Notes under the pieces: model-generated
Databases searched by the model: none
The model's input: only the letters and a program-made list of their open reading frames with translations
Told to the model about the DNA's origin: nothing
Source of the DNA: Haplodiscus bocki
Lineage: Eukaryota
NCBI GenBank assembly: GCA_965655095.1
Contig: OZ296650.1
Span: forward strand, 71,362,001-71,426,000
Direction of reading: 5' to 3'
Length of the DNA: 64,000 nt
Translations under genes and position numbers: made by a program
Part shown: one piece after another, positions 6,101-30,259 of the stretch
How positions within the stretch are numbered: the first letter of the stretch is position 1
How the letters are laid out: each line of letters opens with the position of its first letter

Positions 6101-9100
6101 CAAAGTATCAATGTCCTAAAATGAACCATTAAAATACACGTCAAACCAAAATAGCGCCTCCGGTAATAACATGGCTGCAAGGTCATGAAGCAAGAACAAA
6201 ATTCAACGTTTCACACTTGAACCGTCAAACCAAGCTTGGTTGAAAATTGATGAAAGTTCACATATTTTCAGCGAACAATGTTCATCACCCTAAATAGACT
6301 CGCTCTTCATGAATGAAATTAAGATCTTCGAAACTATTTCAATGCCATCAACCCAAGATTTAAAACGAACACCAACCAGTGATGAATGATTTTAACTTGA
6401 CCCTCTAGAACATTCAGAAATCAGAAAATGATATATTAAACGAGTTTTTCCTCACCTGTTTGAGTGCTACGAACTCGCAATCCAGTTGTTTTATTCTGCC
6501 CAAATCATTATACTGATCCTGTGGCAGTCTTTTTTCGATGTCTTTTAGACGTTGCATTAACGTTTCCCCAGTAACCAAAGCCTAAAATGACTCAATATAC
6601 TGAACAAGCCAAGAATAAGCCGGCGCCTCCCAATGCTCAAAATACTCGTTGGGGAGCCCCTGTGTTCAATAGTTTTTCTTTTCAAGAATAGTCTGCATAC
6701 CAAACGGAAGTTTAAAAGTCTCTAGATTTTCTACCAGCATTCTCGTAGCACTTTTGGGAGGATAGTTGAGAGTGGGCCCTAGTTCAATTATCTTATTTTC
6801 AACAATGAAGCGTCCAAAGTATAATCAACTCGTTGAGGTTGTCAGATAATCGAGGGACAACTGGGCACGCAGATTTGGTAGTTTAAGTTAGGTTTATCAA
6901 ATGAAAACTTTACCGAAGACTGGAAAAAAACGGTCGGTTCGAAGCCAGAAGTCTCACAAAAAAATTACTGCAATGGTCGGCCTCTTCTTTGTGTTAAGCG
7001 CCGACTAAAATCATCCAAAAAAAAATTCATAAAAGTCAGTAGGAATGAGGAAAATTCAGCTAACCTCTCTGGCTCGGTTACCAGTGACGGCAAGGATTCT
7101 TCTTACTCCTTTCGAAATAGCTTCTTCCGATATCAGAACAAATTGCTCAATGTGACCTATGTTTCTCACATGTCTTAAAAAAATTAAACAACTGAGAACA
7201 TCCCAGAAGTACACCTACAATGCTTACGCAACATGCATGAAGTTACGAGGCTCATCGACATTTTCCTGAAGAGACCGGGTTGACTGCCATGGTCAAACAT
7301 GACGATCATGCTATGACATGGTATGATCATGGTGATTCATACTCCCCATGGTATGATCATGGTAAGATCATGTCATGGTCATCATCAAATATAGCATGAT
7401 CATGGCATGGCCGTCGTAGAAACTAGCATGATGATGCCATGGTGACCATGCTCATTATTATAACGTAGTCAGGATGCTAATTATTCAGCCAACTTTGTTA
7501 ATTAGTTATGATCATGGCAAGATCATGGCATGGCGGCCATGTTTTTCCAACCCGGTAAGTCATGAGCCAAGTCATATACTCATTATTGCCTCTATTCAAA
7601 TATTAATCCTAAATGAGACTTACGTTCCACCACAGAACTCGACTGAGTTTTTAAAAGCGTCAACATCTCCAGTTTGACTCACAAGTTTGTCAATCTCTGC
7701 ACCAACGGAGAGCACTCTAACTGGGTCAGGATAAGTCTCGCCAAACATAGCTCTGAGACCCTAAAAATAAAGCCTCCAAGACGGCTGGGCATTTGGGTAA
7801 ACCAACGACTTATTAAATGTAATCGAAAATCTCATTTCGTAACTTTCTGCCAATATATATTCTATTGCATCAGCGGGCAGAGGAAATCAAGTTGTACTAA
7901 CCTGAATAGCTTTGCCCTTAGCCAGAGGTACAACTTGAGCAAAAACGGGCAATTTGTTCTGAATTAACTTGTTCACAATGAGCTCGACCTCTGCAACTTG
8001 TTCGTCTGTCATAGCACCTTTTGCAGTGAAATCAAATCGAAGATACTCAGGGGCAACCAAAGAACCCTTCTGGTCTGATTCAGCCCCAAGCACCGTCCTC
8101 AAAGCGAAGTTTAAAAGATGAGTAGCGGTGTGGTTATTCATTGTGGGACGCCTCCTTTCCTATGAAAATACACTAATATTTTACGAAATACGCATCAAGA
8201 CTTGGGAAACGTTCGGCAACGCTGAGATGGCAATAGCCTGAGATGGTAATAGATTGCAGTCAAATAATTTGGGATAGAAAAAAATTCAAGAAAAAGTGCT
8301 TCACACTAAACACAACTTTTTTACACGCTGGCACAAGTTTAAGTTACGCTCCTCAGATAAATAAATGTCAACCAAACAATCTCTCTCATCATTATGAAGC
8401 ATTTCTTGAAACAAAAACATTTTCGACAGTCCACGCATAGATATATCCTACCCCCCCCCCCCCCTGAATACTTCTGAAGAGTTACTTTTGAACTAACTTC
8501 GTCAATGAGTGTTTTGACTCTGTCTCCGATTGACAAAGTTCCTGATTGCACCTGACCCACATGCAGAACATAACCAGCATGAACTTGCACGTTAGATACT
8601 CTGAAACTTGTCCCAACTCCTTCAGCGCAATCGACAAAAAGGAGGCCCTGGTCAAAAATTTGACCTCCTGACTCGGCGTAGAAGTTTGTAGAATCAAGTA
8701 AAACGCCGCATTCATCTCCAGTAGCAGCACATGCGCACATATCTTTATTCTTAATGATTGCCAACACAGTGCCTTCACTGGATGCAAAATCTGAAATCAG
8801 CACCGGCTTGCATAAACGCAGGTAAGTCATTTTTTGCATTATTAAACCAATTTTTGATGATGATAAGAGGTATTATCTAGAGTAGGAACATCGGAGACTT
8901 TATGGGAGACAACGCTGAAACGCGAAATTCGTTGAAGTGTGTGTTAGAATTCGTCGCGGATCATTTAACAATTCCACTCTTAATTGGAAGATTTTTGAAT
9001 CATATAAGATCGCCATACTTCTGAACATACTAACCATAAATTCCATCCATGTCAGCGGAATAAATATATTTTGGACTGTCGTCGGTTTTTACGACCTTCT

Positions 9101-12100
9101 TGAGCTCCAACTCGCTAATGGCGTGAACGTCTAAAGTTATTGTTTCTCCTTCGGTTTTTCCTTCCCCTTTGCTTACAGCCTAAAATCAATACTTTGATTT
9201 TTCATCACATCAAACTTTGGGTTAACGAATGAATAAATTAAACTTGACCTCAGCTGTTTAAAGTTTTTGTGATCTTTAATTTTCAATCACATTCTGCATT
9301 TCCTATTCCATTCAGGTCATTTTATTACTTTCAAAGTATTAGCCTCGAAGTCAATTTCACTACCTACGAGAACAAAGAAGCTTGGACATTTCTTATGTCT
9401 TCTTGGATTTTGAGCGGAATTTATTTCTTGTTAAGTAGTGTATTGTATTGATCGGTACTAAAAAATCGTGTATAGTCCAATCGAGAAATCGTGAGAACGA
9501 GATCCTATCCGGTAATCCTGAATATCTTTGATCAGTCGGTATTTTCCGGTATGAAAATTTTATGGAAGAATATCACTTATGTTAGTCGTTGGCGGTCAAC
9601 GGTACGTCGTAATAATCTCTTCCAGTTGATACCGTGTCCGGGCATAATACAGGAATTCAGAAAAGTCAAGCCAAAATTTGGCGAAAATTTCGAAAGGATA
9701 GCTTCTGGTTTGCCTTATTTAGTACCTTATTGTTTGATTTGCTGGATAATTTTTTTTTGTAATCCGTGTATTTTATCATGCCTTTTCCATTAATAGTGTA
9801 CGATAATTTTCGTGTATTTGTTCCGGTATCGCATATCGGTGTAATACATTGTTTCCAACGCACAATTGACATCAGCAATGATCAAAAGTTTGTTTCCTAG
9901 GTGTGATCATCTATGCAATTAGCGGCGAAGTACTAGACAACTTTTGTATTTGAATCCTTGAATGTTCGTATCTGAAATGGGAGAAACTCTCTAAAGAAAT
10001 AAAGTTCAAAATAGTCCGATTTAATTTTAAGCTTTAAGCAGACCACGAAACGTCAAGAAAAAATAAGAATGAGTTTTGTTATACTCTTTTCAACTAAAAA
10101 ACGATTTTACGTGACAAGTATGTCAATTAGAGTTGACAATAGCTACTCGATTTTCGACCTCCTATTAAAATGAAGTTTCAGTTAAATTCATGACTTAAGA
10201 ATAAATAGCAAGCAAGTTAAAATAGAAACATGATTTTTTGACACCCTAAGCAGCTCTACTTGGCTTGTTTCAAATTTTTTTAGGCAATCAAAACTGTTGC
10301 AACAATCTAATATTCGCGGAAACCTACAAATTACAAAAAACATTTGCACCTATAAAAAACGTCTGAAAATTGTTTACGGAATTTGTTTGTGCATGTAATT
10401 TCCATCATGCACTGATCTGCTTGCTACTTAAGCTATTCTGGAACTGCTCCGTTCAAATCTGACCTCTGAAAAGCTCTCGATATGCTGAATATAATTGAAA
10501 CGCATGTTGTTTAAACTTCAACATTTATATGAACGTCTACTAATGTTATCTCAAGCTTCGATGCTGAAGAAAGAGTCTTGATAGTTTTAATACATTGAAA
10601 TTCTGGCAGTAACCTTGCATTAGAGTTTCAATAGATTGTTAAGAAATTTCATTTCGAGATGCACCCCAAGTGCCTCGATTCAGACGCAGTAAAATTTCAA
10701 CTATGGTGAAAATATTCAAACTTCGACTGCGCACGCCATATTTGGCAGTATATTCTTGCAAAAATAGATAACATTCAGTAGAAAACTCTGATTATTCGTG
10801 AAAAAATATTATTTCAAAAAACGACTTTTTGATTTCAAAACTCCTTTCAACGAAACCGCTGCTGAAAATAGTGCACTTCTTGCTGTGACATGCATATGCA
10901 ATGCAATTTACTAAAAACGTATTCAAATAGAAATGTCGACTCACGATGGAATGGTTCTTGGCTTTTTCGAAACCTTCCTGGTCAATTGCTAAGCCCTTTT
11001 CTTCAGCCATCAGTGTCGTCAAATCAACAGGAAATCCATAAGTCTCATAAAGCCTCCACACAAGGTGACCTGCAACAATTCACAACGCTGTCAGAGACAC
11101 TTTCCGAAAAAATGATCTGAATACTGAGAAAACTAATGATCATAGTCATATCCTAACATTGGCACGGTTGCACAAAAACATGAGCGTGTTTCAAAGCAAA
11201 ACGTGTCCACTTCAATTTCAACAATCCGACTATAATTGAACGGTGTCGAAACTGAAAAACCAAGGAAAATTAATCAGAAGGCAAATTTTTATCGATTGCT
11301 AAATTAATTGTCTTAATTCACTTCTCAAAAGTATGAGCAAAGTACGTGACATCTTTGTGAAAAGGAGGCGTTTATTTTACATTTAGAACCTAAACTTCCG
11401 CGCGATTCGACCACAAAATTACATTAGTTGAAAATGAAGCCCGTCTGGATATCAAAGTCAACAATTTTTGGCAGTCACGATTCAGCCGGACGAACTTCGA
11501 CGTCAGAACATGCCCAAAAAATCTCTAAGAAGCCTGCAAATACAACGAAGGTTGTCAAAATTAAATATGAAGATTTTATTGAAGCTGAAAACAACATCTT
11601 TTTTCTTCGCCACCACAGCAGCGGACCTTTCGCCACTCAAAGGTTTGGAGTTTTAGATCGTAGAAGTGCACCGTTGAGCGGCGAAAGCTGTGGACAGATT
11701 TTTTTATAAACTCACTTTAAAACTCGCAATAGCACTCTTTTGGGTATACCAAATTTTTCTAAAATACATAACTTTATAAACATAAAAGAGGTCCTAATAC
11801 GATTATTTTGAGTATTACAGTCGTCGTTTGCAGATTTTCTCATCTTTCTATCATCTTCACCATCCTTTATCAATTATACTGCATCTTTTTCCTGATTCCC
11901 CACTTTTTTACAAGGGGTGAATGTGCTCGTTATATTGACAAAAAGACTGCAACGTGCAGCGTATTGGAGTCTGAATTTTTTTTTGTCTACGGCTTAATTT
12001 ACTAAGCTTTCAGAATTTTTATTGCTTGCTCGGCTTTCCAACGATAATGAAAAAATAACCAGAACCGGCTCTGCCCGCAAAGCTCAAAATATGTGTTTCT

Positions 12101-15100
12101 GGGACCTGTGGATGTTTCGGTTATTGGTTATTTCTCAAGAAAGGCAGCACACTCAAGGAAAATACAGTAAGAACTTGAACTTCAGCCACCATTTGCGCAA
12201 AATTTCTTGGATGTATAATCGAGAGCGATCATTGGCCGAGAGTGGCCCCGACTTCCATCATCTTATTTTTAACAATGAAGTGTAATCATTTTCTCGAAAT
12301 TGGCATATAACCGAATTTGTCGGTTATTTACTCCAGCTAAACATAAGTTGGCAAAAGTTGCGTATAATCGCGGGATAGCTGGGGTTATCATTATCGTGCT
12401 TACAACATACGAAATCAGAATGTGCAAGAGGGGGGAATCAAGAAAATTTTCATAGTTTCCCTGTCGAAACTTTTCTGTCTTTACTCAAAAAGGTGTATCA
12501 CGAGCATTCTGGCATTTGAGACGTTCAATGTTGCATGGGAGGAACAGATTACCGCAAAATTGCAACTCTAAAATTTAATCGATTCGAAGTGGCATCTGTT
12601 GTCCTACGAAAAGTAATTGCAATAGTTGGCATCTTTATTTTTAGTAAAGGGAGCCGGAAATTCCATTACCAAAAAGCACAGAGGCAAAGCTGCGTCTCGC
12701 ACAGATTTGCTCCAAACAAGGCAAAGCTTGCATCGATAGACGGCATTCCGAAAAGGATAAAAAGTTCTTGAAAAAATTGTTCCACAAAAGCCCAAAAATT
12801 GGATATAGTAGCTGCACATTGGGAATCCAACGTAAATTTCGAGCAGAAGGGTAATTGAATAAGCACTACATGGTTGTACTCCGATTAAAAGTTTCAGCGG
12901 AAAACAGGTTTTAACACAGAGGCGAAGCGGAACTTCGCAACACAGTTTGACTTCTCAGTTGAGATCAAAGATAAAGTTCACAAATCAAAAGTCCTCAGAA
13001 ATATTTGCACCTTGATGGGATACCTGATTGACACATTTAGAAATACTACACCAGATGTCTGTCAAAAAGTTGTTCCAAAAAATCTAAATGAAATAAGAAC
13101 TTCTCACATTATCTGATATTCGAAAAGTTGATTTGTCAGTTATGGTTTTATAGATTCGCTATTTTGCAGCCAATGTTCAAGTAAGACTTGACAGTAAACA
13201 ACGCCAAAAAGAACAAAACTACAGGTCCTAAAAAACGTTACATGAAAAAAATTCAGCTCTCAAAACGGCTAATATTAGTCAATAAGACGTCAAAGCAACT
13301 TCAAAGTTCTTTCTATCTCCGATGTCTTGTCTACTAATATTAACCGTTTTGAGGTCTAAAATTATACATGTAACAAATTTTGGGGACACTTTTTACATTG
13401 CACACACCCTCTCAACCAAAACATTGTTATGTGAAACAATACCTTTTAGAACACTGTTGTTCACTTTTCAGAAAGCCAAAATTAACAAGTACCTGCAAAG
13501 ATTTTCAAAAAGGGCCCTTTTTGACCGTTTAGACTAGATGACTAGACTCTCTGATGACGTCAAAGTATGCAAAGTTTTGGAGAGGATAAAAAAAACTATG
13601 CATAAGTCGGTTTCCAATACACATTCTTACTTTCACTCAGATTGTGTACAAACAGTAGCGAGTAAAACCTTTTCAAATTCCGGAACTCAAAAAAAACACA
13701 GAGGCAAAGCGGAACTTTGCAGCACGTTCTGACTTCAGTCAAGATTACGGATCAGGGAAGACAATTGAAACAAAGATCGGAGAGGTGATTGACATCAGCT
13801 CTCAAGCAAGAGTCAAACTGGCACATATACCTGTCACGGTCTCTTACTTAGAAAGTTGGTATCTCAATCATGTGTCATCACTTACACCATTTCGTTGCCC
13901 AATGTTCACAAAGTTTGTACAGTAAACAATGCGAAAATGAACAAGTAAAAATGACAGTGTCATTCAAAAAATACATATTTTCACCGTATCTTTTCAGTTT
14001 GCGCCATTCTGCTGTCAATGTTTAGGAAGTTTGCACAGAAAGGAACGCGTCAATGAACAAGTACCTACTTTGGGGTCTCATTCGAAAAACTGGTCATGTC
14101 AATCAATTTTCTCTAAAGTGAAGCCAATTTGCAGTCCAATGTTTGATAAATGCACTGTACACAACGCAAACAGCAGAGCATCCGGCCAGCAGAGCACACC
14201 TTGTTCTTGTCATTAACCACTACCTACAACCTCGACCTTACCAGAAGCGGAACACCTCCTATTCAACTTGAGCAAATTGTTTACACCATATCAAGACAAA
14301 AACAAGAATCGACCGTAACAAGTAGGCGGTTTGCAAACTTAATGATTTTTCGGAAAATAGAAAACAGGATAAAAACAAGAACTGGTCATAAGCCGGTTTC
14401 AATACGCATTCATCCTTTCAGTCAGAATGTGCATTTAATTACCAAAACAAGAACCGAAAAAAAGCTCCCGCTCGTCGGCAAAAATTCCAGCAAACGCGTG
14501 ATTTAAAAAGCATAGGGTGGTACCAAAACAAATACCAAAAGATGGCGACCAAAAACCTTTCGCAGCTAAAAAACAATAAAATTCGTGAGGAAAACGTGAA
14601 AGAAAAAATTTTCTCCCAGCGACAGATTGATAAAAAAGTATTGCATCGCTGCACTTTGGTCAATATCTTCCTGAAAACACGTTTGAAAAAAGAAGCATGC
14701 ATTTTGTTTTGAAAATTCGAATTACCAGTCACCATGATTTGCGGACAAAAGATAACTTGGTCCTCCCAGCTACTTAGTGATATCTCCACTTCGCAATCGT
14801 GGACTCAAAACGCACCCGGCGAATTCTGCCGAACAATTTGGAAAAGGCAGCGTGAACAAATTTTGCGACGGCTGCGGAACGGCATGAAATTTAGGGGACA
14901 AACTATGACATAGCATGAACAAATTGGCAACACCGCTTGATTCAATAAGTTGCTGGAATTGCGCGTTGTCGAAATTCGGGAAAAGTAAGCCTGATTGCAC
15001 AACATTTGGCTGTGCAACAGAAACAAAAGCTGAGCTGCGTTTCACAAACACTTGCCGAGACATTTGAAAAATGATAATTGAACATGCTGCAATGAGAGAT

Positions 15101-18100
15101 TGGAGATAATTTATTGTGACAAGACTGATAGCATAATGTTCATTTGAAATTTTCATGCTTGTTGGCGCGCAAACCTTTTATCGCTGTTTAATTAACTGCA
15201 AAGCGTGACAGTTCTGTATGATGTTAAAAAATTCGAAACAATTGCCTGGCGTCATTCTTTATACAGTATAATCAAAAGAGCCCAGGATCCAACAAACTGT
15301 GGATTCCAACAAACTTCCCTCACCGCACAGTTTCCCATGTCCATCAAGGACTTGGATCTGCCTGGCTGACGGTTGGATCATGTTCGATAAGTTGGCACCT
15401 ATTCCGTGAAGAAAGAAACCATCCTGCTTCCGAACTATCAAAAAGCACCGTAAATCTTGGCATGGTTCCTTAGCATTAGATCAGATACTTGAGCATCAGA
15501 GTTTCCCAAGAAAAGTTGACAGCAAGATCACTCACTATTTTTTTCTAATAAGCTCTTGAGGCCAGACTAGAAGTGAGCATCTTGGTGCCCAAGGTTTGAT
15601 CGCCAAAAAACCTTCTGGCGGAGACTAAGTATTCGTACATTATAAACGAGCCTTTAATTGCCATATGAGAGTAAAACTCGCAAACTACAAACAGAGCTGT
15701 CAAGTTAAACCATTACAGATGAACTTTGTCGAAACCGACTCATTCTCTACCAGTAAACCAAAAGTTTTGGAACCCATTCAAAACACAACGTAAAACTAAT
15801 CGAGTTTTTGCTGTCCTGATCATGGTGGATGAAATTTTTTTATTGTTGCTTGCACACAAAATGCAGGTGGTGAGCAGGACTAAGTGACAATAGGAATTTC
15901 CAACAAGTAGCATCATTTCCAATTCATTTCACAAAAAAAACTATAAGCATATCCGATCTGATAAGCAAAAAGATGTTATTCTAGTCACGAGTCCTGCCGT
16001 GACGTCTGTGCAATCTGACGATACTGTAGATACATATGTGCCAAGAAGTAAGAGTCCGAATGTCACTAAAGGATGAAAAATTCGCTCGATGATTTATCTT
16101 TCAGCAGAGACCTATTAGAAAAAAATTGAATCTCCAACATAAATATGCTGTAGTGGAGGTCATTTAGTCAATTCTATTTGAAATTGGGACGTTCCTGAGG
16201 GCTATTTGTCGTTGTATAAAGCTGCCAGTATGACAAAAAAAAACGTCAAAGTGACCTAAAGTCTCTCAGTTTCTGTTGAAGAAATTCCGACCGCCAAGTA
16301 CATGGCAGATTTTTTCAACTTTGCTCCGCAGCATCCGATATTTAACAGCCCCAAATTACGAAGAGAGATTAGTGATGATTTTTCTCTCTTCACAGGCATG
16401 TTTTTCTGAAACTATCGGCCGGACTTCTTCCATTAACGTGTCATTCAACAACTTTCTCTTTTCAAATAAGTATATATTTCGAAAGTTTTCGTTTGTCAGC
16501 TTTAAGCTGAAAAGGTGATGGGCCAACAACGCTGAGAAAGGCAATTAGTATTGATTTTCCAGATATTGAAGCTCATGTTTCTCCGAAGCTACCAGCTGGA
16601 TTTCTCCTATCAAGGTCCATTTCGCCACCTCATCATTTGTGGAAAGGCAAGTAATTGGTGTTTTCGATATTCCTACACTTTTCCCTCGAAACTATTGCAT
16701 GGATCTTTTCAATCGCTGTCACAATCCACATTTTTTTGTACATAAGGTCCTCCGATTATCTTATTTTCAATAGAGTGACATGCAAGGAAAATTTGGTAAT
16801 TATTTTACGAGGTAACAACTTTACGAGGTAACAGTAAAAGCAAATTTTTGGATTTCTCTTGAGATTATATTGGTGTTTTTTGTTTTGAAATCGGGGCAAT
16901 AGTTGAAAAGTTTGGCATCAAAATTTTTCGAAAATCTATTTCGTACACAAATTCTAAGAAAAAATATTAGATTTTGAAGCTTTGAATCTCTTCCAAAACT
17001 TTCGGCAGTTACAATTTCCTGGAAAATTAAGTCCCTAAAAGTCCACGTTACTCAATAGAAGTGATTTTTCCATACATTCAGTTATGAAAAATTTTGACGT
17101 TTTTCGGAAATGAGATCTCAGAAAAATATTGAATCCAGAAGTTTTAGGGGACATTCAAAGCTTTAAAACGGCGCATACTGTGTTCTTCTACCTCTTTTGG
17201 AGTTTTAAATTTGGAAGTTCTAACGCAAGGATACGAAGACATCGCAAACTTGGAAGAACGGCCGTTTTTATGAGAAAAGAAACTTGGGGCAAATTTGCTT
17301 TTCATGGCTTGGTGTAGACTGTCAAGTTTCAGTTGAGCCCATCAAATCTAGATTTTTCATCCATTTACTATGCGGTTTCCATGAAGAGTCACCACCCCCC
17401 CCCCCCGCATTTGTACTCTCTGAGCCTCAAAATTTGCAGTCCCCTCTGATTTTAATCCCTCTGGTATGGATTTTTAAATTTTTTGACCGCGTAAGAATCG
17501 TTTCGCTTTTTTTGCATTTGCTTTCCATTGCACTTTGCTTAATCCACGACTCACAGTCTACGCTTTCACGACCTCATTGATACAAATGTTGGCAGAAACC
17601 TGAGTAAATTCCAAATTTGGGACTAGAAAAGCTGATGAGTCTGAAACCATTTTTGGACCCCACCCCCTCTTTATTAAAACTTCTCCTCTTAAAAATCAGC
17701 CACTTTCAATCAGACCCCACTCTTAATAGGAACTAATAGTCAATCAAAATCTGAAAAAGTCCAAAAATGATGACAATGACCAAAAATGGGGATCTCAAAC
17801 TCTTTGAATATTGGTCCGACTTTCATCGAACAAAAAGCTTTGTGATCTTATCAAAATTCTGATTTTTACAGAACAAAAACTTTGCGATCTTATAAAAATT
17901 CCAAGAACATTCAAATTTTTGTTTCTACGACTCTTTCTAGTTTTGAGCTTCAAAAAGATCAATTTTTGCTCAGAAGTTAACTTAATTGAAATCAATACTG
18001 TACACTTGTCAACTCGCTTCTCTCGCATGGCAAGTGTAATAACGCAATGGATGGTTCTCAATGTTGGCATAGTCTCACACGGTCTTTTGGAATTAAATTT

Positions 18101-21100
18101 TTTGTTCACTTGGAAGTGAATGTTGATCAATTAATATCAGATTTTCTATAGGAATCTGATTGGCTGTTCAATTTATCTGGGACTGGCGATAGTTTACTCC
18201 AAAATGATCTATAAAGGTTCATTCAAAATTTAAATCTTGCAAGACTCAAATCAGATTTGCACTTAGTTATCGGAAAAATACTCAGTCATCCGAAGAGAAG
18301 CAAAATTTATGAAGACCATCAAGGTCTTAGTACCTGGAAGCACTTTCGTATCAAGCTGTGATATTGTCTTCTGAAAAACTTTCTGTCCATGGATTAGAGT
18401 TTTCAAAAACTGCTGCTCTTCTTCATTAATGATTCTTTTCACAGAATTTATAGAAGTTGTCACTTCCGGGAAGAAATCTTTCAGAGAATCCACTGTCTCA
18501 TCCACGATACTGGCCAAAAATCCTGCCTTGGCTTTGAGAATTTCAGTTGAAAACCTAACGGCTCGCCTCAAAATTCGTCTGAGAACATAGCCGCGTCCCG
18601 TGTTATCTGGTCTCCCGCCGTCTGTAATGGCAACTGTTAAGGTTCGAACGTGGTCTGCTAGCACCCGGTAAGCCATGTCAATAGAATCTGCGTCTTCAGG
18701 TCCCAATTTCCCAGTGTAAGGTCGCACATCGGCTTTCTGAATTTTCACGACAAAATGATCAACTTTTCAAGTCTAAAGATTCAATGGATCGGCTATTTAA
18801 TTGTTTACCTTTTCGATTGCTTTGAAAATTGGGTCGAAGACATCGGTGTCATAGTTGGACATTTTATTTTGGATGACGGAAACAACGCGCTCAAAGCCCA
18901 TTCCTGTGTCAACGTGTTTTTTCGGTAATGGTCTCAAATTTCCTCCAATTTCTCTGAAAAAAGAACATTTGTCTCAATCAGTTAAAGAGAAGGTATTGGC
19001 GGCCATTTGTGTATGCTGATGCTGACTCATGCAACCCAGTTACTGATGCAAGAATGCTATGTATTAATCTCTTGAGAATGGAGCGAATTAGGAAAAATTG
19101 GCTGATAAATTGGAAAACAAGATGCAAATTAATTTGGCAACTTTGAAAATATTTGAATCAATAACGAGTATACTTGAAATCGAAAAGCCAAGACATTTTC
19201 GCTCTAGCTGGGGACAGAAAAATAATATAAATGAATGAAAATAAATACCAACAGAAATGGCTCAACCGGCCAGTCACATGGATTTGCGAAGTGCAGAGAA
19301 AAACAGTAAAATCTATAGGCCTCAAGTCTATCAGCTTAATGCCTAATTTTTTCAGCTCTAATTCTTTGTAGCACTGCCTGAATTTGATCAGTTCTAGCTC
19401 AAGCAATTTTATGTCCTATAAAAATTGAACTATAATTAGAGATGCACCAACCTGTTGAATTGGATGAAAACAAGATTCCAAATTTCAACAACTTCCGGAT
19501 CGTCCATGTTCACTAAACTAGCAGCGTTTCTGCCACCAACTCTGTCATAATGAATTTCGCTGCATGGACCACATGGGCCAGTATCACCCATCTCCCAAAA
19601 ATTGTCCTTCATGCCAAACGGAAGGACTCGATCTTCAGGAATGCCCAGCTTGATCCAAATCTGTCTGCATTCCTCGTCAGGCTCTAAATTTGATGGTTCA
19701 TAGCCACCGAAATATGTGAAGTAAAGCCGATCTCGTTCAATCCCGTAATAATTTGTGAGTAAATCAAGAGCCCACTCACAAGCTTCTTTCTAGAAATACA
19801 GTAACAAGGTGGAGATAATTTTAAGAAAAACATTGAATTCCTTTGATCAAAAAGAACATACCGCATCATGTTCATTCGTGAAAAAAAGAAGCGTAAAATT
19901 TTGACAAAACAATTTGAAGGATGAAGAAGGGGTTAAGAAATGAAATGAGGGGGGCAAAATTATTTGAAACGAAAGTCACTCCATTATCTTTTGCCATATT
20001 CCGGTCCGTTTACTTCGTATACAAACTTCTCAGAGAACAATTTTATTTTCTTCTTGAGTTTCATAAGTGCGTTTTTTTCTGGTTTTTTATATTTTCAGGC
20101 ATGGTGTTCCACAGTGAGACCACTGTCTCGAAAAAAAACATTTGCGTAGGAACTCTGAATTGGTTCAGATCGAAATATTCTTCATTCCTTCTACTTTGCC
20201 TCCTTATTTTAGCGGTAGGAAGTACAATTTTCCCTTTGAAAGCTGGAATAAGGTTCTTGAGCTTCCAGTAGCAGTTAATCTCTTCGATGTCAAGAAAATA
20301 TCGCACTGGCAAGAAGTTGTAGTTTAGTTTCAAATCCAAAGAGTGATCATATTTACTTCTATTGAAGCATGCTGTAACGCCCCAGTTTAATTGTTTTTCC
20401 AGTGTTGTCAGTAAATTTTCCGACATTCCATTTAATAAAAGTGTTGGATAATGTAAATAAATAACAAAGGACTAAGACATTGAGAAGTAGCGGATGTGTT
20501 TTGATTGGAAAGAAATCGCGTATAGCGTAAATAGTTTTCATTCCGCCAGCCAATTTCCGTGAGATATTTTTCACGTCATCTTGATATCTTAGGTTTTGGT
20601 CAAGGAAAACCACAAAATACTTTATAGATTTCGAGACATTGATTTCTTGATCTTTGACCGATAATCTGATTTTATTAAACTTTGGGTTGTTGTTTGAGTT
20701 GCAAAAAAATAATATATTCAGTTTTGTCTGTATTGGTGGCTAGTCTATGGCTTCAAAAAACTCAATCAAACTTTTAGCACTGGTACTTAATTTTTCAACC
20801 GCTTGTTTTTCATCCGAGTGTGACGAGAATATCATTGTATCATCGGCATATTTTATTAGAGAACAATTCCCAGTAACAGTTTATTGCATATTATTGACGT
20901 GAATAATAAACAGAAGAGGCCCGAGGACGGCAAACTGTGGAACACCTTAGTACAATTGGATCCATTCCAAATACCAAGTAGACAATGTCACTTTTCGATG
21001 TATTTCTGTGAGATAATTTTCCATCATGGATATAGCTTTTTCATCAAAATTGAGATTTTTGAAATTTTGCAGAAGGATTTTGTGTGAAACTGAATCAAAC

Positions 21101-22309
21101 ACTTTCGATAAATCAAGGAACGCTGTAGCTACTGTTTCATTTTCGTCTACATTTTCCTTATGCTTTCAGTCACAAAAACAAAAGTGCATCTGTTGTCGAA
21201 AATTTTTTTTGGAATTCAAACTGCAGTGGGTTCAGTAAGCTACTTTGAGATATTCATGTCGTCATTTTTTCTCTTATTACTTTCTCAAAAACTTTGGATA
21301 GAGCAGAAGTAATTGAATTTGGTCAACAAATATTCGGATTTTCAGAAAAACCTTTATTGAAAATTGGTGTTACGAACTCTTGCTTCAAACGGTTAGGGAA
21401 TTTTCCTTCATAGAAAAAAGCATTAATCAGGTAACAAAGTGGTTCAACAATGATGTTCATGAAATCTTTTAGTGCCCACGCTGGGATTTCGTACGGACCC
21501 AAAGGTTTGTTGATATTCAAGCTTTTGACATACTTCCGGCATTCAAAGAGGCTTATGGGCCGAAAGCTGAAGGTTTTTCTGGTTAACGATACTTCATCAA
21601 ATGATTGATCAATATAGGCCAAATTACTCATTTAATTCTGAAAATCGATAATTCAGGAGATCTGCAATTCGTTTTTGGTCAGTGATAATATCTCTGAACG
21701 AATTTTTTACATGAAAAAAAACACGTTACTATGGAAACATTGAGTCTCAAACATTTGCTACCTAGACAAATTGAAGTTCATCGTGCAATACGACGTATCA
21801 AAATTTAGTTTATCAAATCCCTGCACTTTCAAACTTTTTGGTTCTCGAGTCATGAGAAAAATACTATACAAGAAACTTCGAAACACTGAGAGTCCCTATA
21901 TCTCGAATTTAGTTGCAACTGTGAAAATGAACTTGGTTCTTAGAAATTGGAGCTAAACATTTGCAAAGAGAGCTAACCTTGAAGTAATCTCCAAACGACC
22001 AATTTCCCAGCATTTCGAAGAATGTGTGATGATAAGTATCTTTGCCTACGTCATCTAAATCATTATGTTTTCCACCAGCTCTAATACATTTCTGTGAATT
22101 GCAAGCCCGTTTCAATTTGCCCAAACTACTGTTGGTGTCAGCGGTTCCAAGAAAAAGAGGTTTGAATTGATTCATTCCGGCATTAGCGAACAACAAAGTT
22201 GGGTCTTCGTGTGGAATTGTGCTAGAAGACGCCCAAAATGTGTGTGCATGTTTCGCTGAGAAGAAGTCAATGAAACATTGCCTTATCTCCGCACTGGTTG
22301 TTGGTTTGG
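1..22309 (-). CDS. AARS1: Cytoplasmic alanyl-tRNA synthetase core (aminoacylation, tRNA-recognition, editing and C-Ala domains), 14 exons
   Basis: Motifs: [131 protein letters not shown], editing HTATH and EFCGGT|HV, C-Ala KGGGK. About 966 codons, matching typical AARS1 length. Confidence 0.97.
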
Positions 22310-25300
22310 CTAAAAATATACCTGTATTGCATAGCCCATACTACACTTTTCAAGTCATAAACCAGAAGTATTCAATTTTGATTGTTAAAATATTCCTTTA
22401 TAAATTGTATAGACGAGCCCAACGGATCTACACAGTTTTAAGAAGCTGAAGTTCACATCCAAGCTTTTACTGATTGGAACAACATTAATTTATGAGTTCA
22501 AACGGAAATAACCGGCGTACAGGGACCATACATGATGAGTGAAACTTCACTGGCCAAGCAGCATTTTTTTGAAGCAAAACGAAGACCTGTGTAATTTATT
22601 CATTTTGAAAAATTATAATTTTCAAAAAATACTCACAGTTTTTCATTTTGCAGGAAAATTCCAGTTTTTTAACTCTGTCTTCTAAACTCTGCATTTGATT
22701 CTGTATTTTTTCAAGACCTGAAAATCAGGTTTAGGAATTATAGAAAAGACTATAATGTAGTTTTACGAAAAATACGTAACTTGCAGTTCACTCACTCTCT
22801 TTCATTGCCTGTTGTCCGGATTCCACGTTATCGATTCGAGCAACTGACCTCGACCAATTGCCCTGAAATCAATTATGAATTATCAAAATTGCGCTTCAGA
22901 TTTCTGCGAAGAATCCTCAAGTGATCTGTTTGCTCATTTTAATCAACAATGCCAAAGTCAGACACGGCTTCAATTTATGGTTTCTTTCTTACGCCGCCTT
23001 AATGAAGAGAATCGTAAGATTCTCGACAAAATGACAACTCATATTATGTTGACAATTTCGGAGCGTAAATTACTATTGTCCGCATATTCAACGTCAACGA
23101 AATGGGGCAACAAAACAGGAGACAGAACACTAAACACGGAGATGTGCGATCTATTATAAATGATTTCTAGAGATGCCAAACATTTTCCCAAAAATTCTTA
23201 TTTCTGTACCTCGATACTAAAATCAAAACGAAACGTAGCAATCAATACTTTCCACTAAATGTTTATTTTTTAACCCCTTATTTTATATGGAAGGAAAATT
23301 ATTCGATCGGTATGGGCGTTTTTTTTTCAGACAAATTTTGCCAATTTTAATCTCAGTAAAAAATTAAACCAAGAGGGTTTCGAACCACCAAACTTCGACT
23401 TCGCAAACTCAAGACATTACCACTAGACCATAGCACATAAACCATGACACATTTCTCATATAAATATTGATAGATTTAATATACATATTGGGCGAAAAAT
23501 ATTCCGGTGTCAGTCGTCCGTCTTGTTTATATTTGCATGTTAGAAGAATTCATCGGGAGTCACGCACCTGAAATTTTGGATTTTCGAAATAACAAGCTAC
23601 CTTGCCATTTCATAACGTGCCAAAGCGTCCCTACTAAGAAAACTTTTGGCACTGAGACTTTTTGGACAAAAATTGTGATACCCTCTTTGATATAATCAAT
23701 TCTTTTGGAGAGCCACTCAGCAAAAAGTTGTTTATCGAGTTAGCGCGCTTACCAGGCAGTGAAAAAGATACCAGAGAGCCCCCACGAACGCTTGTGGCAC
23801 TAAAAGAAAATTCGACAAAACATTGTGAAGCCCATTTTTTGGATATAGAAGATTGTTCCAAAAACCAAAAACTACAACACGCCGGGAACAGCCTAAGTCG
23901 GTGCTATCTGTAGGGGCGAAAACATCCATGGAGACCTTCTGTTGAAAAGACCCTGGACTTTCTGACAAAAATATGTTACGATCACGTTTTTTATCGTAAA
24001 AATTTTGTCGCGCAGCGACGAAAATTAACTAGAGGGACTTTGTGGTACAATATTTACTGCCTGATAAATTCTATTTTTTTTTCAACCTTCTTAGTAAAGG
24101 CTTTTCCATTTTTTTGTAATATAAAAAGGGGATAGGAGTTATCACGAAATTTTTGGAATATAAAGATTACGCATTTCTGGCCGGTCGTCCAGAATTGATG
24201 TTCACCTAAAAATGTTAAACTCGGAAAAATGTTTAACAATTAGAACAGGTCGTGATAACACGGTAAGAAAAGCCACTGTGATAATCGGGCACTTATCAAA
24301 AGCACCGGCTAAAAACATCACCAGAGTCCCCTCTACAAATATTTTGAGCCTGAAGGGCCGAGCTGACTTTGGCTGTTCTCGTCTTGTTAGGTCTTGAGGC
24401 AATTTATGGACACACTTATGACTAACCGTTGTCAATTTTTTGAGGTATAAAATTTTTCCTTTTGAGTCAACGCCGAAAACTAGATCATTCAGAAGTGGCA
24501 CTTTCAGCCGCATTTTGCAAAAATGGAAGGCTGAAATTACCCCGCAGATAACCGGTCGTTTTGTTGTTGTACTGTTCTTAATTCAAATTTTTCTTGTTGT
24601 TAAAATAATTAACATTTAATACTACTTGACATTTATGCACTTGAATGAGCACCGGATGTGAAAATTGAACAACAAGCCGAGCACAGCTCAAAATTGGAGC
24701 CACTCACAGCTCAAAGTCGGCGCCGTCCATTGGCCGGACGCAAAAACTTGGACAAAGCATTTTTGTCAAAAAATTTAGCCTCACAGTGCCCAAAAACATC
24801 TTAGGCGGGACACTGAAGTATTTTAAAAAATATCTTCCCAAAATTTTCGGTGGAGCAAAGGGAGGTATCACGATTTCAGTCTGAAAATTGTCTTCAAATA
24901 CCGAAGAAATTTCGTACAGGGACGCCTTTGTCACTCAGCGAAATTTGGTCCACCGTAGGAAAGCTTTTCCAACTTTTCCAGAAATTCGTGCAGTGTGCAC
25001 TAAAATTGGATTGATTATTCGAAGCTAGGAAAAGCGCCTTACGGAAAAAAGAGCAATAATCGGGCACTTTTTCTTCCAAAGAGCACCGACTAAAAATGCT
25101 ACGGAGACGAACGAAGTTGAAATGGAAAAGAATTAAAAGCCAAGCCAGCGTATTAAAATTTCATAAGGAGTGGATTCGGCCCTTTGTTTAATCTATGATT
25201 TTCATGTTAGTTTATTCTAAAAAGGGACTGAAATATATTTATTAATTTAGCTTCGCATGCTTTATTGTGAGTTCCACACGTTTTCAGTTTAGTACCACAC

Positions 25301-27491
25301 GCAAAAAGAAGAACTCTGAATTTCTAATCTAATTTCTATTCATTTGTAGCTATTCTTAAGCTACCTGCGACAGAGCTTCTTGTATGATCTCTCTGGCTTT
25401 TCTGAGCTCTTCGCGAATGCTTCCAGAGTTGGCCAGCAACTCTTGATCACTACTGTCATTACCAGCTCCGTTTTCTCCATTCCCCGCACGAGTTTCCCTT
25501 CTCCACTGCTTCTTGCCAGACCCACGCTCACTGGCACTCGAGTAATCACGTTGGTTGTCTCTCTTCAGCGGTGTTGATTGATTTTTGGGAGCAAATGCTT
25601 CAGCACCACAAACGCTTCTATCATTATGTCTGCTGCCATTTTTAGAAGCCTTTGGCCTTGAGCCAGAATTATTCAAATTTCTCTACAAAACACGAATGGC
25701 GTGAGTGGTAAAATTGTTTATTTAGATGATTTCATGCTTTGGTCATTCATAGGCATGCAGGATCTGAATTGTTGCACAGAGCACAACGAAAGTCGTGATC
25801 AGAAGAGGAATTACAGAAACAGAAAAAGGAGAAAAGCCAAAACACGATGATGGAAAGATGCACATGCCAGAAACAAACAACTAAGGAGACACTTTATAAA
25901 AAACAACAGACCTCAAGATCAATTTGACTAGATAATCGTTTCCAGTACAAAGATTCGCGCAGCTGTGAATCCAGTTGTTTTAACCACACGCTGCTGACGT
26001 CTGCCAAAACAACTGAGCCAACTACACGCGTATTATTTTCTGAACGCTTATCAGGTGCTGTGGTTTCCTGTTACAACAATGCAGAAATTAGGAGTCTTTC
26101 AGAATTGATACTATGATTGTAATACTCTGCAATTAACCTTTTGAGAGGAAACCAATTTTGGTGATTCACTTTGCGATTTACGTGTATTTTTGATTGTTTT
26201 CGTTGGAGATTCATCATAGGTGCAAGAAGGGGGCCTTGCACCATTAATATTTGAAAGCTTGAGAAAGTAATTGCTCTCTTCTTCAGCAAATTTAAGCCGG
26301 TTGAAGTTACAGTTGCATCTAAATGCCTCGACGTCCACTCTTAAACAATTTAGAGGTTCCCTCTCCACAGTCTCATCTTTATCAAACGTCTTTGCTTCAC
26401 AGACTTGCTTGGCAACTGGGTATTTTTCTTCCTACAATGAATAACATCAAACTTGAACCTTCATTTATGCACCAACGAAGATTATCAAAAAAAGGAAGTT
26501 TGACAGATTGGACGGGAAAGAACCGATATAGCTACCACAGCTTTACCTTGGGCTTAGCTTCAATTTCATTGACGTCTAGAAGTGAGCCAACAGTGGCCGG
26601 ATCAAATTTTAACTGCTTTTTGGGAGTAGCAGTTTCAGAAATGAGAAACGTTGATTCGTCAGCACTGAAGCTCAATTGATCCATCCAAACAGATTTCGCC
26701 AGGTTACACAGAATGTCCTGAAATTTTGAGCTTCATGAGAACATAATCGTCAAAAAAAAAGAACAAGTAACTCTGAGACATGCTTCTACAAGTCTACACC
26801 AAGCGAAACGCACACTGAACTATGGACTAAAGTAGTGCCAAATGAAACTTTTGATAGTGCTGACATCAATGAATGGTGGTTTTCTCAAGCGTTATAAATG
26901 AGCTGGATAAAATGACATCAGATCGTAAGAAAACCACGCATAATACAGATAAAGGAAAGAAAGATCATGCATTCGTTATTCAAGACTTTCTACCTTGTTT
27001 ATTCCAGAAAAATTCAAGGCAGCTTCCTTGCCCGGAATATAAGATTCGCTTTGATCATCCCGAAGAGCAAATTCTTTGTCTGAGACTCCATTTTTCACTT
27101 TCAGATTAATGCTTGCTTTCCATGCATTCACTGTTTCGGGTTTAATGTTATCGTCACTTGGGACAAGGATATCCGTTTCGAACGCTATATCTTTCTCTTT
27201 CTCTTCTTCAAATTTCCCAACTTCATTAGATGATTCTTCGGATGGATGCGATTGTTTTTGGGTCGACAGTTCTTGCAAGCTAGGGCTTGGCCTTACAGTA
27301 TTTGACGAGGTGGCCTGCTTGTTCAAACTCTCACTTGTTACAGATTTGGGAATGGAAGTTGCGCTAGAGACGGCTTCTGTGTCCACGCTATTTGCATTTT
27401 GCTTGGCTGATTTCTGCTTGTTCTGCGGCTTTCTCTTACTAACGCCCTGCTGATTTTGGTTCCCTCCACTTTTTGGCTTCTTCCGAGCCAT
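1..27491 (-). CDS. AARS1: Alanyl-tRNA synthetase with long eEF1B-delta-like N-terminal extension; 21 coding exons, ~1494 codons in window, 3' end runs off the window
   Basis: Minus-strand exons: 27491-26994, 26717-26547, 26431-26138, 26067-25912, 25682-25365, 22862-22796, 22717-22637, 22309-21978, 19789-19452, 18953-18809, 18736-18334, 11069-10945, 9179-9035, 8790-8498, 8159-7902, 7760-7624, 7173-7065, 6581-6456, 6115-5912, 1504-1406, 184-1. All 20 introns are GT..AG with matching phases and no in-frame stop. Confidence 0.75.
1406..1504 (-). CDS. AARS1: AlaRS exon (C-Ala)
   Basis: ttgcag/gttaat boundaries, 33 codons TLNRAAQ...CMFFVPK, phase 0-0. Confidence 0.8.
4050..4100 (-). repeat. tRNA-derived repeat fragment
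   Basis: B-box AGTTCGAATCC on the minus strand in an intron; no full cloverleaf. Confidence 0.4.
5912..6115 (-). CDS. AARS1: AlaRS exon (C-Ala helical region)
   Basis: ttttag/gtgggt boundaries, 68 codons [14 protein letters not shown]...STDDK. Confidence 0.85.
6456..6581 (-). CDS. AARS1: AlaRS exon
   Basis: ttttag/gtgagg boundaries, 42 codons [16 protein letters not shown]...ALKQ. Confidence 0.85.
7065..7173 (-). CDS. AARS1: AlaRS exon (editing domain end)
   Basis: [31 protein letters not shown]; tttaag acceptor, gttagc donor. Confidence 0.92.
7274..7556. mobile_element. CATG-rich MITE-like element
   Basis: Perfect 9-bp terminal inverted repeat ACCGGGTTG/CAACCCGGT enclosing many CATG/GATCATG words. 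Confidence 0.7.
7624..7760 (-). CDS. AARS1: AlaRS exon (editing domain)
   Basis: [20 protein letters not shown]...SVEFCGGT; gtaagt donor. Confidence 0.95.
7902..8159 (-). CDS. AARS1: AlaRS exon (editing domain, HxxxH)
   Basis: [21 protein letters not shown]...[15 protein letters not shown]. Confidence 0.95.
8498..8790 (-). CDS. AARS1: AlaRS exon
   Basis: [21 protein letters not shown]...GYVLHVG. Confidence 0.95.
9035..9179 (-). CDS. AARS1: AlaRS exon
   Basis: [40 protein letters not shown]; phase 0-1. Confidence 0.9.
10945..11069 (-). CDS. AARS1: AlaRS exon
   Basis: [31 protein letters not shown]; gtgagt donor. Confidence 0.95.
18334..18736 (-). CDS. AARS1: AlaRS exon
   Basis: [42 protein letters not shown]. 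Confidence 0.96.
18809..18953 (-). CDS. AARS1: AlaRS exon (motif 3)
   Basis: [34 protein letters not shown]. Confidence 0.96.
19452..19789 (-). CDS. AARS1: AlaRS exon
   Basis: [12 protein letters not shown]...[22 protein letters not shown]...[11 protein letters not shown]. Confidence 0.96.
20150..21640 (-). mobile_element. 5'-truncated decayed LINE RT fragment in an AARS intron
   Basis: [14 protein letters not shown]...[40 protein letters not shown] at ~20835-20850, [11 protein letters not shown]. Confidence 0.88.
21978..22309 (-). CDS. AARS1: AlaRS exon (motifs 1 and 2)
   Basis: [13 protein letters not shown]...[15 protein letters not shown]...[18 protein letters not shown]; phase-1 acceptor, with no in-frame ATG upstream before a stop. 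Confidence 0.96.
22637..22862 (-). CDS. Two exons (22862-22796, 22717-22637) encoding an eEF1B-delta-like leucine zipper joined in frame to AlaRS
   Basis: [22 protein letters not shown]|[27 protein letters not shown]. Heptad pattern aligns by eye to EEF1D [36 protein letters not shown]. tttcag acceptors and gtgagt donors. Confidence 0.85.
23371..23432 (-). repeat. tRNA-derived SINE-like sequence
   Basis: A-box TGGTCTAGTGGT and B-box GGTTCGAAACC; imperfect anticodon arm with 8-nt loop. Confidence 0.6.
25365..27491 (-). CDS. Five phase-0 exons encoding an eEF1B-delta-long-like N-terminal region (basic start, low complexity, repeated W-D-F-E motifs, ARE-IQ helix)
   Basis: MARKKPK...; [17 protein letters not shown]; [17 protein letters not shown]; [17 protein letters not shown]; [19 protein letters not shown] (cf. 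EEF1D [19 protein letters not shown]). Exon lengths 498, 171, 294, 156, 318 nt, all multiples of 3. Confidence 0.75.
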
Positions 27492-27706
27492 TTACGCTGA
27501 CGTGTTATATAAAATGTATATATCCCAGTGTTTCTTTTGCGATAGAGGCTTCTTCAATTCTGGAAAATCAGGAACTTGATACTGATTGCACAAGAAAACT
27601 TATTAACCTTCCACTATTACCAATTCATAGCTGTTCCAAATTAGGCAGTCCAACTTTAATTTCTTACAAGAGATAAAACTCCTTTAATTAGACATTTTGT
27701 ACTAAC

Positions 27707-27838
27707 AGTGTTGCTGTTCTTGCACGAAGTAAAGCCAAGAGGCAAATAAAACGAAGATTCAGCACTATCGTATTTTAATTTGTCAATCCAACATGTTTCC
27801 AGATCACTCTTGAATAAGTAGAAGTCTTCAACTGTCAT
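27707..27838 (-). CDS. Putative alternative first coding exon (or uORF) carrying the best-conserved eEF1B-delta N-terminal motif
   Basis: cttttag|ATCCA ATG, then MTVEDFYLFKSDLETCWIDKLKYDSAESSFY... (cf. EEF1D [18 protein letters not shown]). Phase-0 donors gttagt after 27707 or gtaaga after 27668. Confidence 0.65.
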
Positions 27839-28306
27839 TGGATCTAAAAGTGATTTATTATTTGCCGCCCAATATTTAATATATGGAAAGAAAATCATTC
27901 GTTCAACATTCAGCATTTTTATTTTCCACCAAAGTTCAATATGGGTGGAAAATCATGCACTCAACGCTTGCGCTTTTTTACGTTTATCAGCCAATTCATG
28001 AGATATAAAGAATTTTGAAAATTTTTAATGAGCAAATTATAGAAAATTTGTTGTAGAATGCGAATGACAGTAGGGTTTCTTAAAAACGTATAAAAATGGG
28101 TTTTTGGAGTCAAAAAGTTGAATTTTTGTTGAAAAGACATGAATTTTTTCAAAATTGACGAAAACGCAGCATATGTGATATAGAACGCAAATAGGAGGTT
28201 ATTATTTTTCGCAGTATATGTAATATACAAGAAAATTATTCATTCAGTAGGGTCGTTTTTCTTTTTTTTTCAGACCAAAACTGCCAACTTTTTATTCAAA
28301 AATAAA

Positions 28307-28376
28307 TGACAGCAGTGGGGCTAGGACAACAAGGTTCTCAAGTGGTAGGCTCGGGGTTCGAGTCCCTCTCGTGTCA
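28307..28376 (+). repeat. tRNA-derived (SINE-like) head upstream of the tandem array
   Basis: TGACA...TGTCA terminal pairing and B-box GGTTCGAGTCC; no canonical D or anticodon arms. Confidence 0.6.
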
Positions 28377-28399
28377 AACTTTTTTACGATTTATCCTTA

Positions 28400-29830: not shown

Positions 29831-30259
29831 CATAGAATATAGAAATCAGTGGTGGAATTGATGTTTGTAGAAAACTTTCGCAAACCAGATTTTAAACAGT
29901 AGTCTCGTTTTTACCTGTGGGTAAATATGTTGATCAAAAAATTTGTATTCCTGCGAAAAATATGCCGGTGCTAGCCGGCCGTCTTGTTTCTTCCTCAAAA
30001 CGTATCTGTAACAAACTTGGAGCGCGGAAAACATCCCGGTGGTAGCCGAGTGTCTAGTTTACATGAGATTTGAAAATGGCATGAACGTGCACTGTTACTA
30101 TAAATAGAATGTCATTGAATACTCGATTCTAATTGGACGACACAAAAGCGCTGGAAACCTATTACTATAAATAGCATGACGTCTCCAAATAATCGATTCT
30201 GATTAGACGAGAGAAAAAAAACGGGAAATTTTTAAGAGCAGGAAAAAAAGCGGGAAATA

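Follow-up and report, generated by a model that had tools for sequence, protein, structure and literature searches.

The window analysed here is a stretch of 64,000 nucleotides (nt) from Haplodiscus bocki (GenBank assembly GCA_965655095.1, contig OZ296650.1, positions 71,362,001 to 71,426,000 of the forward strand), and positions below are counted from its first letter. Its minus strand carries a gene for alanyl-tRNA synthetase (AlaRS) in which the exons of the enzyme are preceded by a series of exons coding for an N-terminal extension. The extension resembles the N-terminal, scaffold half of the elongation factor protein eEF1B-delta, which is encoded by EEF1D in animals.

Exon structure and transcripts of the AlaRS gene

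We derived the gene model by reading the sequence and translating it in three frames. All exons lie on the minus strand. The 5' exon, exon A (27707..27846), has an ATG at 27838 that opens a stretch of 44 codons (27838-27707) encoding a motif of the eEF1B-gamma-binding type, CWIDKLKYDSAESSFY. Exon B' (26994..27559) is entered through an acceptor at 27559, joined to exon A at 27707>27559, and is present in a 1565-nt RNA contig. Its coding part, exon B (27491-26994, 166 codons), opens with the ATG of a long open reading frame (ORF) at 27491, directly preceded by an in-frame TAA, and translation from this ATG yields a basic N-terminus that resembles a nuclear localization signal (NLS), MARKKPKSG. 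The four following exons are all of phase 0-0 and are connected by RNA joints: exon C (26547..26717) and exon E (25912..26067) each encode one motif copy, exon D (26138..26431) a degenerate copy, and exon F (25365..25682) a low-complexity linker with a helix at its end. A leucine zipper is split between exon G (22796..22862, 67 nt; first half), which is spliced from either F or A, and exon H (22637..22717, 81 nt; second half), which ends with MKN plus one base and provides a phase-1 donor to AlaRS. Full-length alignment places the exon F helix between the motif and the zipper. Every exon border from A to AlaRS is GT-AG, and exons B to H sum to 1585 nt, or 528 codons plus one base, stop-free and in frame with AlaRS.

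The first AlaRS core exon (21978..22309) is entered at joint 22637>22309 through a phase-1 acceptor and matches Pfam tRNA-synt_2c over profile positions 1-99 (2e-51). It brings no start codon of its own, since its first in-frame ATG falls inside the catalytic core. Further ORFs at 5894..21977, with approximate borders, supply the remainder of the catalytic domain, the editing/tRNA_SAD region and a putative C-terminal part. Together, the exon ORFs cover positions 1-99, 152-208, 215-424 and 460-550 of PF01411, positions 100-151 and 425-459 being encoded by exons outside the Pfam submission, and a tRNA_SAD (PF07973) match lies at 7059-7214 on the minus strand (3.4e-7). Neither the ORF at 6417-6578 nor that at 5897-6103 matched Pfam at 0.01; both look by eye like the C-terminal region. 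The 3' end is approximate. Judged by its sequence, the 3' half appears to be a complete cytoplasmic-type AlaRS, and the gene qualifies as an AlaRS gene.

Transcripts were found by searching sequencing runs with an exon-rich stretch of AlaRS, which identified X6, a run of 82 Mb made from another sample of the same organism. We mapped its contigs, which are assembled contigs and not raw reads, onto positions 21950-27900. They are confined to exons, with a depth of zero in the intron between H and AlaRS, and X6 behaves as RNA. GT-AG joints were seen for all junctions of the gene model, including A>G and A>27559. An unbranched contig of 2324 nt (depth 474) begins precisely at the first base of exon G, contains joints 22796>22717 and 22637>22309, and runs through G, H and AlaRS to downstream AlaRS exons; the shorter side measures 79 nt at the H>AlaRS joint and 69 nt at the G>H joint. 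The 1565-nt contig (depth 101) carries the joints B>C, C>D, D>E, E>F and 25365>22862. Exon A is joined at 27707>27559 to the acceptor located 68 nt upstream of the exon B ATG, and at 27707>22862 directly to exon G (depth 151). At both F>G and A>G, the shorter side measures 29 nt, under the 31-nt rule that we used for bridging; a remainder of 29-30 nt is expected at a unitig branch point with words of 31 letters, which is the word size of the run index and the one that we assume for Logan contigs.

At least two mRNA forms are thus made from this gene. The short form, A>G>H>AlaRS, is in frame from the exon A ATG because A and G are both phase 0, and it places one gamma-binding motif and the zipper, about 94 residues in all, before AlaRS. 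In the long form (A>B'>C>D>E>F>G>H>AlaRS), one further codon is read in the frame of exon A before a stop (AAT TGA), and exon A therefore becomes a 45-codon upstream ORF (uORF). The main ORF of this form starts at 27491, and its extension of about 529 residues comprises, after the basic start, three additional copies of the motif, the helix and the zipper. Since both ORFs are free of stops up to AlaRS, their translation must yield fusion proteins.

Comparison of the RNA allele of X6 with the window lists 27 differences within the gene model, 11 of which are synonymous, 14 non-synonymous and 2 untranslated (in the 5' part of exon B'); none of the 27 creates a stop. A 155-nt contig of X5, a run from another organism closely related to the first, aligns at 96% with the 3' end of exon B and terminates at the donor.

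These data bear out most of the gene model of the first-pass annotation, which had been made from the letters alone. It had described the phase-1 acceptor and missing ATG of the first AlaRS exon and seven upstream GT-AG exons with matching phases adding about 525 stop-free codons (528 plus one base by our count), and all three junctions that it had named (22637>22309, 22796>22717 and 25365>22862) are present in X6 contigs. The span that it gave takes in exon A (27838-27707), which does not belong to the seven-exon ORF; this is a 5' exon spliced to 27559 or to G. The long fusion stands, whereas the short A>G isoform and the uORF role of exon A had been missed.

Two other gene structures were considered and set aside. 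A separate small first coding exon for AlaRS, for which chance candidates exist (e.g. 23613-23601), has no RNA joint in X6. A separate upstream gene ending past the H donor (stop at about 22599, with an AATAAA nearby) is at odds with the zero RNA depth of the intron and with the unbranched contig.

The 5' end of the transcripts has a feature of its own. The RNA contig of exon A covers 27707-27846 at a depth of 165 and has a loose 21-mer upstream. These 21 non-genomic bases, TGTTGTGATAAACTTATTAAA in transcript sense, adjoin a ttttag acceptor 5 nt before the exon A ATG, its AG being at 27845-27844. The 21-mer was found neither in the 64-kb window nor in the contig of another species, L001, described below, which has a tcag acceptor at the place matching the ttttag of exon A. 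It fits trans-splicing, and we take it as a candidate for a spliced leader, about 21-24 nt long.

The uORF of the long mRNA lies at 27707-27838 plus 27554-27559 in the window and at 7865-7996 plus 8441-8446 in L001, and in both species it ends with an N-stop just inside B'. Alone, it encodes a peptide of the eEF1B-gamma-binding type, and it could be a conserved regulatory uORF or a micropeptide.

Conservation of the extension and its relationship to eEF1B-delta

A search with a profile of the repeats returned P0121, an ORF on a European Nucleotide Archive (ENA) contig of another species, which led us to that contig, L001. It has the same zf-HIT neighbour, the same order of exons A to H and AlaRS, and GT-AG at all borders; the orthologs of exons D and E lie within P0121. 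Exons A (132 nt), G (67 nt) and H (81 nt) are identical in length between the window and L001, and the length differences in exons B to F are all multiples of three. In L001, the long ORF is open for 654 codons into AlaRS, its ATG and first 8 residues are identical to those of the window, and the A>B' frame stops at the same place (AAC TGA). The shared exon order, the 67- and 81-nt exons, the multiple-of-three differences and the common open frame exclude a frame left open by chance.

The two species are far apart, with saturated synonymous sites (dS, synonymous divergence, about 1.7). The ratio of non-synonymous to synonymous divergence (dN/dS) is 0.21 over the 542 codons of the extension, and 0.10, 0.13 and 0.13 in exons G, H and E, respectively. 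Amino-acid identity is 69% in exon C and 96% in the AlaRS exon, and the exon F helix is 100% identical between divergent flanks. Both species retain an ATG in G and another at the end of H. L002, a further assembly of the window's species, aligns collinearly at 99.95% over 11 kb.

Searches of 5.8 billion clusters with the zf-HIT gene and with a profile of exon B returned only the window's species and L001. The lineage is very poorly sampled, since the zf-HIT protein has only two sequences in that collection. A protein search with the AlaRS exon retrieved assorted eukaryotes with a best identity of 80% and no close relative.

The extension was next compared with known proteins. At E values up to 10, exon A has a single match in the Protein Data Bank (PDB), to residues 11-29 of EF1-delta in 5JPO_E (E = 0.019), whose 32-residue peptide corresponds to EF1-delta 1-32. 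Residues 11-29 of eEF1B-delta are the segment protected upon binding to the GST-like domain of eEF1B-gamma (PMC9458455). We then built a profile, A3, from four repeats of the window, including that of exon C, and searched 1.84 billion representative proteins with HMMER. The search gave 17 matches at E <= 1e-3, mainly vertebrate EF1-delta long isoforms (down to E = 1.6e-8). Leaving aside P0121, which is the ortholog, and two or three repeat proteins without relation to it, the matches are 310-716 residues long and have 2-6 motif copies. Several are named elongation factor 1-delta (paddlefish, frog, cyprinid), and EF1_GNE together with EF-1_beta_acid was found in 5 of the 10 matches scanned against Pfam.

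A hidden Markov model (HMM) built from eight of the matched long isoforms aligns collinearly with the long extension and keeps the order repeats, helix, zipper. Restricted to the segment from the last motif to the zipper, the HMM scores 37.4 bits against the short extension of the window and 25.9 bits against that of the relative, levels reached by 0 of 1000 shuffles in either case (maximum 12 for the window). The zipper HMM alone scores 16.3 bits on the window (0 of 1000 heptad-preserving shuffles). EEF1D has an EEF1G-binding domain (1-43), an alternative KTN1-binding helix and a leucine zipper (80-115), in this order (PMC13231004), and in the alignment the exon F helix takes the position of this alternative, kinectin-binding helix of mammalian EEF1D. 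The leucine zipper of human eEF1B-delta is a trimer (PMC9458455). Pfam searches with each extension exon returned nothing meaningful, including no acidic region (PF10587), and a PDB phmmer search with exon F returned noise only. The extension is thereby supported as homologous to eEF1B-delta over the N-terminal half of that protein.

The second half of eEF1B-delta is missing from the window. A DLFGS-type D/E-rich motif was not found in any frame of the 64 kb, nor were motifs of the GEF (guanine nucleotide exchange factor) domain (PF00736) in its six frames, and the spliced mRNA passes from the zipper straight into AlaRS. Because it is devoid of the acidic region and GEF domain, the gene is not itself an eEF1B-delta gene. 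Conversely, neither motif nor zipper occurs in any of the 120 nearest AlaRS N-terminal fragments of other organisms.

The resemblance to the EEF1D N-terminal half and the replacement of the acidic/GEF half by AlaRS had both been proposed in the first-pass annotation, and they are sustained here by the A3 profile, the 5JPO match and the HMM scores, and by the content of the window and of the mRNA. The same fusion, for which it had suggested a search in related genomes, is present in L001 with its exons, phases and open frame. It had also stated that no described AlaRS of this architecture was known; our literature search likewise found no AlaRS with such an appendage, and no eEF1B-delta module on a synthetase.

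The A3 search also illustrates how widely the multi-motif layout occurs. Its vertebrate matches (P0123, P0124, P0126, P0130, P0132, P0134 and P0137) come with annotations of multi-motif long EF1-delta proteins of 630-716 residues in ray-finned fishes, paddlefish and frog, which cluster with a whale-shark protein; a newt protein of 409 residues, not named EF1-delta, has motif copies as well. A 2015 review described the long isoform of eEF1B-delta as restricted to mammals and birds (PMC4346937). The repeat-rich long layout is now found in fishes, amphibians and a shark and, joined to AlaRS, in the genome of the window.

Predicted coupling of AlaRS to eEF1B and its alternatives

We interpret the locus as a single gene in which the scaffold half of eEF1B-delta is followed by an AlaRS in place of the acidic/GEF part, the scaffold half docking or oligomerising the enzyme on eEF1B, and we assign this reading as a whole a probability of about 0.62. 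The sequence comparisons trace its 5' half to the scaffold half of EEF1D, the choice between short and long splicing included. Most likely, the module would dock AlaRS on the eEF1B complex, oligomerise it there, or both. The motif would bring AlaRS onto the GST-like domain of eEF1B-gamma, and the zipper would either join AlaRS into homo-oligomers or let it assemble together with eEF1B-delta. The enzyme would be placed in, or would form, an eEF1B-type complex beside the site of eEF1A recycling, like the vertebrate valyl-tRNA synthetase (ValRS). Alternative splicing would set the number of docking motifs, the basic N-terminus and the helix on AlaRS.

A more far-reaching version is tentative, and we consider it possible rather than probable. 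It holds that an ancestral EEF1D scaffold half became the N-terminus of AlaRS, that AlaRS is a stoichiometric subunit, assembled through the zipper, of an eEF1B-type complex in which it replaces the GEF of delta, that splicing decides whether the enzyme goes to a cytosolic elongation complex or to an endoplasmic reticulum (ER) or nuclear pool, and that the long layout is pre-vertebrate. If true, the multi-motif architecture of the long isoform would be older than vertebrates.

The fusion shares with eEF1B-delta the N-terminal motif W-x-D-K-x-K-Y-D-x-A-E-x-x-F-Y, comparable to the residues that bind eEF1B-gamma (11-29), an optional helix between motif and zipper, and a leucine zipper of five heptads in the same register. 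As in the long isoform, eEF1B-delta-L, there is an alternatively spliced long form with extra motif copies and a basic N-terminus (PMC9458455, PMC13231004, PMC4346937). Unlike eEF1B-delta, the fusion gene has no central acidic region or GEF domain, and AlaRS follows the zipper. It also differs from eEF1B-delta-L: the exon with the canonical motif lies upstream of, and out of frame with, the long-specific exons, unlike in vertebrates, where the long isoform includes this motif, and the long-specific part is split here into five phase-0 exons.

To our knowledge, ValRS is the only synthetase known on eEF1B, and AlaRS is the textbook synthetase that never gained appended domains. ValRS binds eEF1B non-covalently through its own GST-like N-terminal extension, forming the vertebrate ValRS-eEF1B complex (eEF1H). 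The likeness to the present case is the coupling of a synthetase to the eEF1B scaffold, predicted for AlaRS, with the presumed benefit that charged tRNA is handed to eEF1A. In contrast to ValRS, AlaRS itself bears a delta-type motif and zipper, the coupling would come about by gene fusion, and AlaRS would use the opposite face, as a ligand of gamma instead of through a GST-like domain. VARS has been reported as a partner of EEF1B (PMC13231004).

The extension can also be set beside the appendages of other synthetases (GST-like, WHEP and EMAPII domains, the leucine zipper of ArgRS) and the multi-synthetase complex, with which it has in common a non-catalytic N-terminal interaction module and isoforms that vary in this module. 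Synthetase appendages and synthetase-eEF1B coupling are both known from other systems. AlaRS has been described as retaining its prototype structure throughout biology (PMC8887476).

A conserved and expressed AlaRS with the docking motif and zipper of delta offers a natural experiment on the coupling of synthetases to eEF1A recycling (tRNA channelling), and the fusion could link tRNA charging directly to the elongation machinery. It also probes the role of the N-terminal half of delta when parted from the GEF domain. The gamma-binding motif and the zipper seem to occur in other protein contexts, a second one being P0129, a protein of 713 residues encoded by a Logan transcript contig of 2494 nt. 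P0129 has two copies of the motif, in the form W-x-[DN]-R-L-[DE]-Y-E-E-A-E, followed by a long coiled coil; it differs from the fusion in its C-terminal domain, which is a TRAF-type MATH domain and neither a synthetase nor a GEF.

Several observations weigh against the eEF1B-coupled fusion. Its main ATG in the long mRNA lies behind the 45-codon uORF. At 474, the AlaRS contig has a mean depth greater than that of the two upstream junctions combined (151 + 101), and a third 5' end, e.g. a spliced leader joined to exon G, is therefore possible; such a form would possibly start at the conserved G ATG or at the MKN/T of H, with a partial zipper or none. The full-length connectivity of single molecules is deduced from unbranched unitigs. 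The zipper match of the relative is modest when taken alone (8.5 bits, a score reached by 15 of 1000 shuffles). The EEF1D order of motif, helix and zipper proposed in the earlier annotation holds in the collinear alignment and for motif and zipper, whereas the helix alone matches EEF1D weakly (4.8 bits, p ~0.02).

A real fusion whose module works other than through eEF1B is an unlikely alternative, although the strongest of those we weighed. The extension would then be a device for self-oligomerisation or localisation, its motifs binding another GST-fold protein, with zipper-driven AlaRS trimers, anchoring to the ER through the helix in the manner of EEF1D with kinectin, or import of the long form into the nucleus by way of its basic N-terminus, as for eEF1B-delta-L, as conceivable examples. 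The long form, with its basic NLS-like start and several motif copies, is indeed built like the nuclear-acting eEF1B-delta-L (PMC4346937), and P0129 joins a motif pair and a coiled coil to an unrelated MATH domain. A localisation role could likewise be read from the helix, which stands where mammals have the KTN1-binding alternative exon (PMC13231004), but its similarity is weak, and the best-conserved motif copy, in exon A, matches exactly the EF1-delta residues that contact eEF1B-gamma (PMC9458455).

We find it improbable that the working AlaRS is a canonical enzyme, started at the ATG at the end of H (MKN/T-S-KPTT) or in G by way of leader>G mRNAs or internal initiation, with mainly regulatory upstream ORFs and only minor fusion proteins. 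The excess depth of the AlaRS contig and the non-genomic leader apparently used at exon A would suit such starts, and so would the conservation of the G and H ATGs and the resemblance of MK(N/T) to an ordinary AlaRS start. Nevertheless, the unitig is unbroken at the 5' borders of H and of the AlaRS exon, which speaks against abundant leader>H or leader>AlaRS forms, and a form begun in G keeps half of the zipper. Moreover, purifying selection acts on exons B to H as read in the fused frame, with frame-preserving indels, which is unexpected for a mere leader. Leaky scanning to the internal ATGs of G and H is disfavoured by the conserved out-of-frame ATG in exon A.

That two adjacent genes were misassembled, or that the assembler created chimeric contigs, has a negligible probability: the data are indeed assembled contigs rather than raw reads, with F>G and A>G joints that fall below the 31-nt rule, but the length of these joints is that of unitig branch points, the H>AlaRS and G>H joints have far longer flanks, the second assembly is collinear, order and phases recur in an independent species, and DNA contigs of X1 and X4 span 22671-27900.

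Neighbouring features

Directly upstream of the AlaRS gene lies a single-exon zf-HIT gene of 345 residues (31688-32725, minus strand). It is syntenic with its counterpart in L001 (6558-7601), and the two are 57% identical.

High-copy repeats, with a depth in DNA runs of 10-40 times that of their flanks, occupy 23144-23541 and 24935-25133 in the 2.5-kb intron between F and G, and 28400-29720 upstream of the gene. Fragments of tRNA-like short interspersed nuclear elements (SINEs) lie near 23400-23470 and 28330-28380; ARAGORN found no intact tRNA gene in 21-32 kb. Tandem units of about 120 nt fill 28400-29840. Over 21950-22347, by contrast with these repeats, the DNA runs show a depth of zero, which probably stems from the filtering of conserved genes.

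The intron that follows the first AlaRS exon holds a non-LTR reverse-transcriptase fragment (21323-21631, minus strand). Farther upstream, a run of 200 N at 44801-45000, either an assembly gap or masked sequence, is flanked by very AT-rich simple repeats. A long terminal repeat (LTR) retrotransposon with the order gag, protease, reverse transcriptase and integrase lies upstream of the zf-HIT gene, on the plus strand at 34762-38536.

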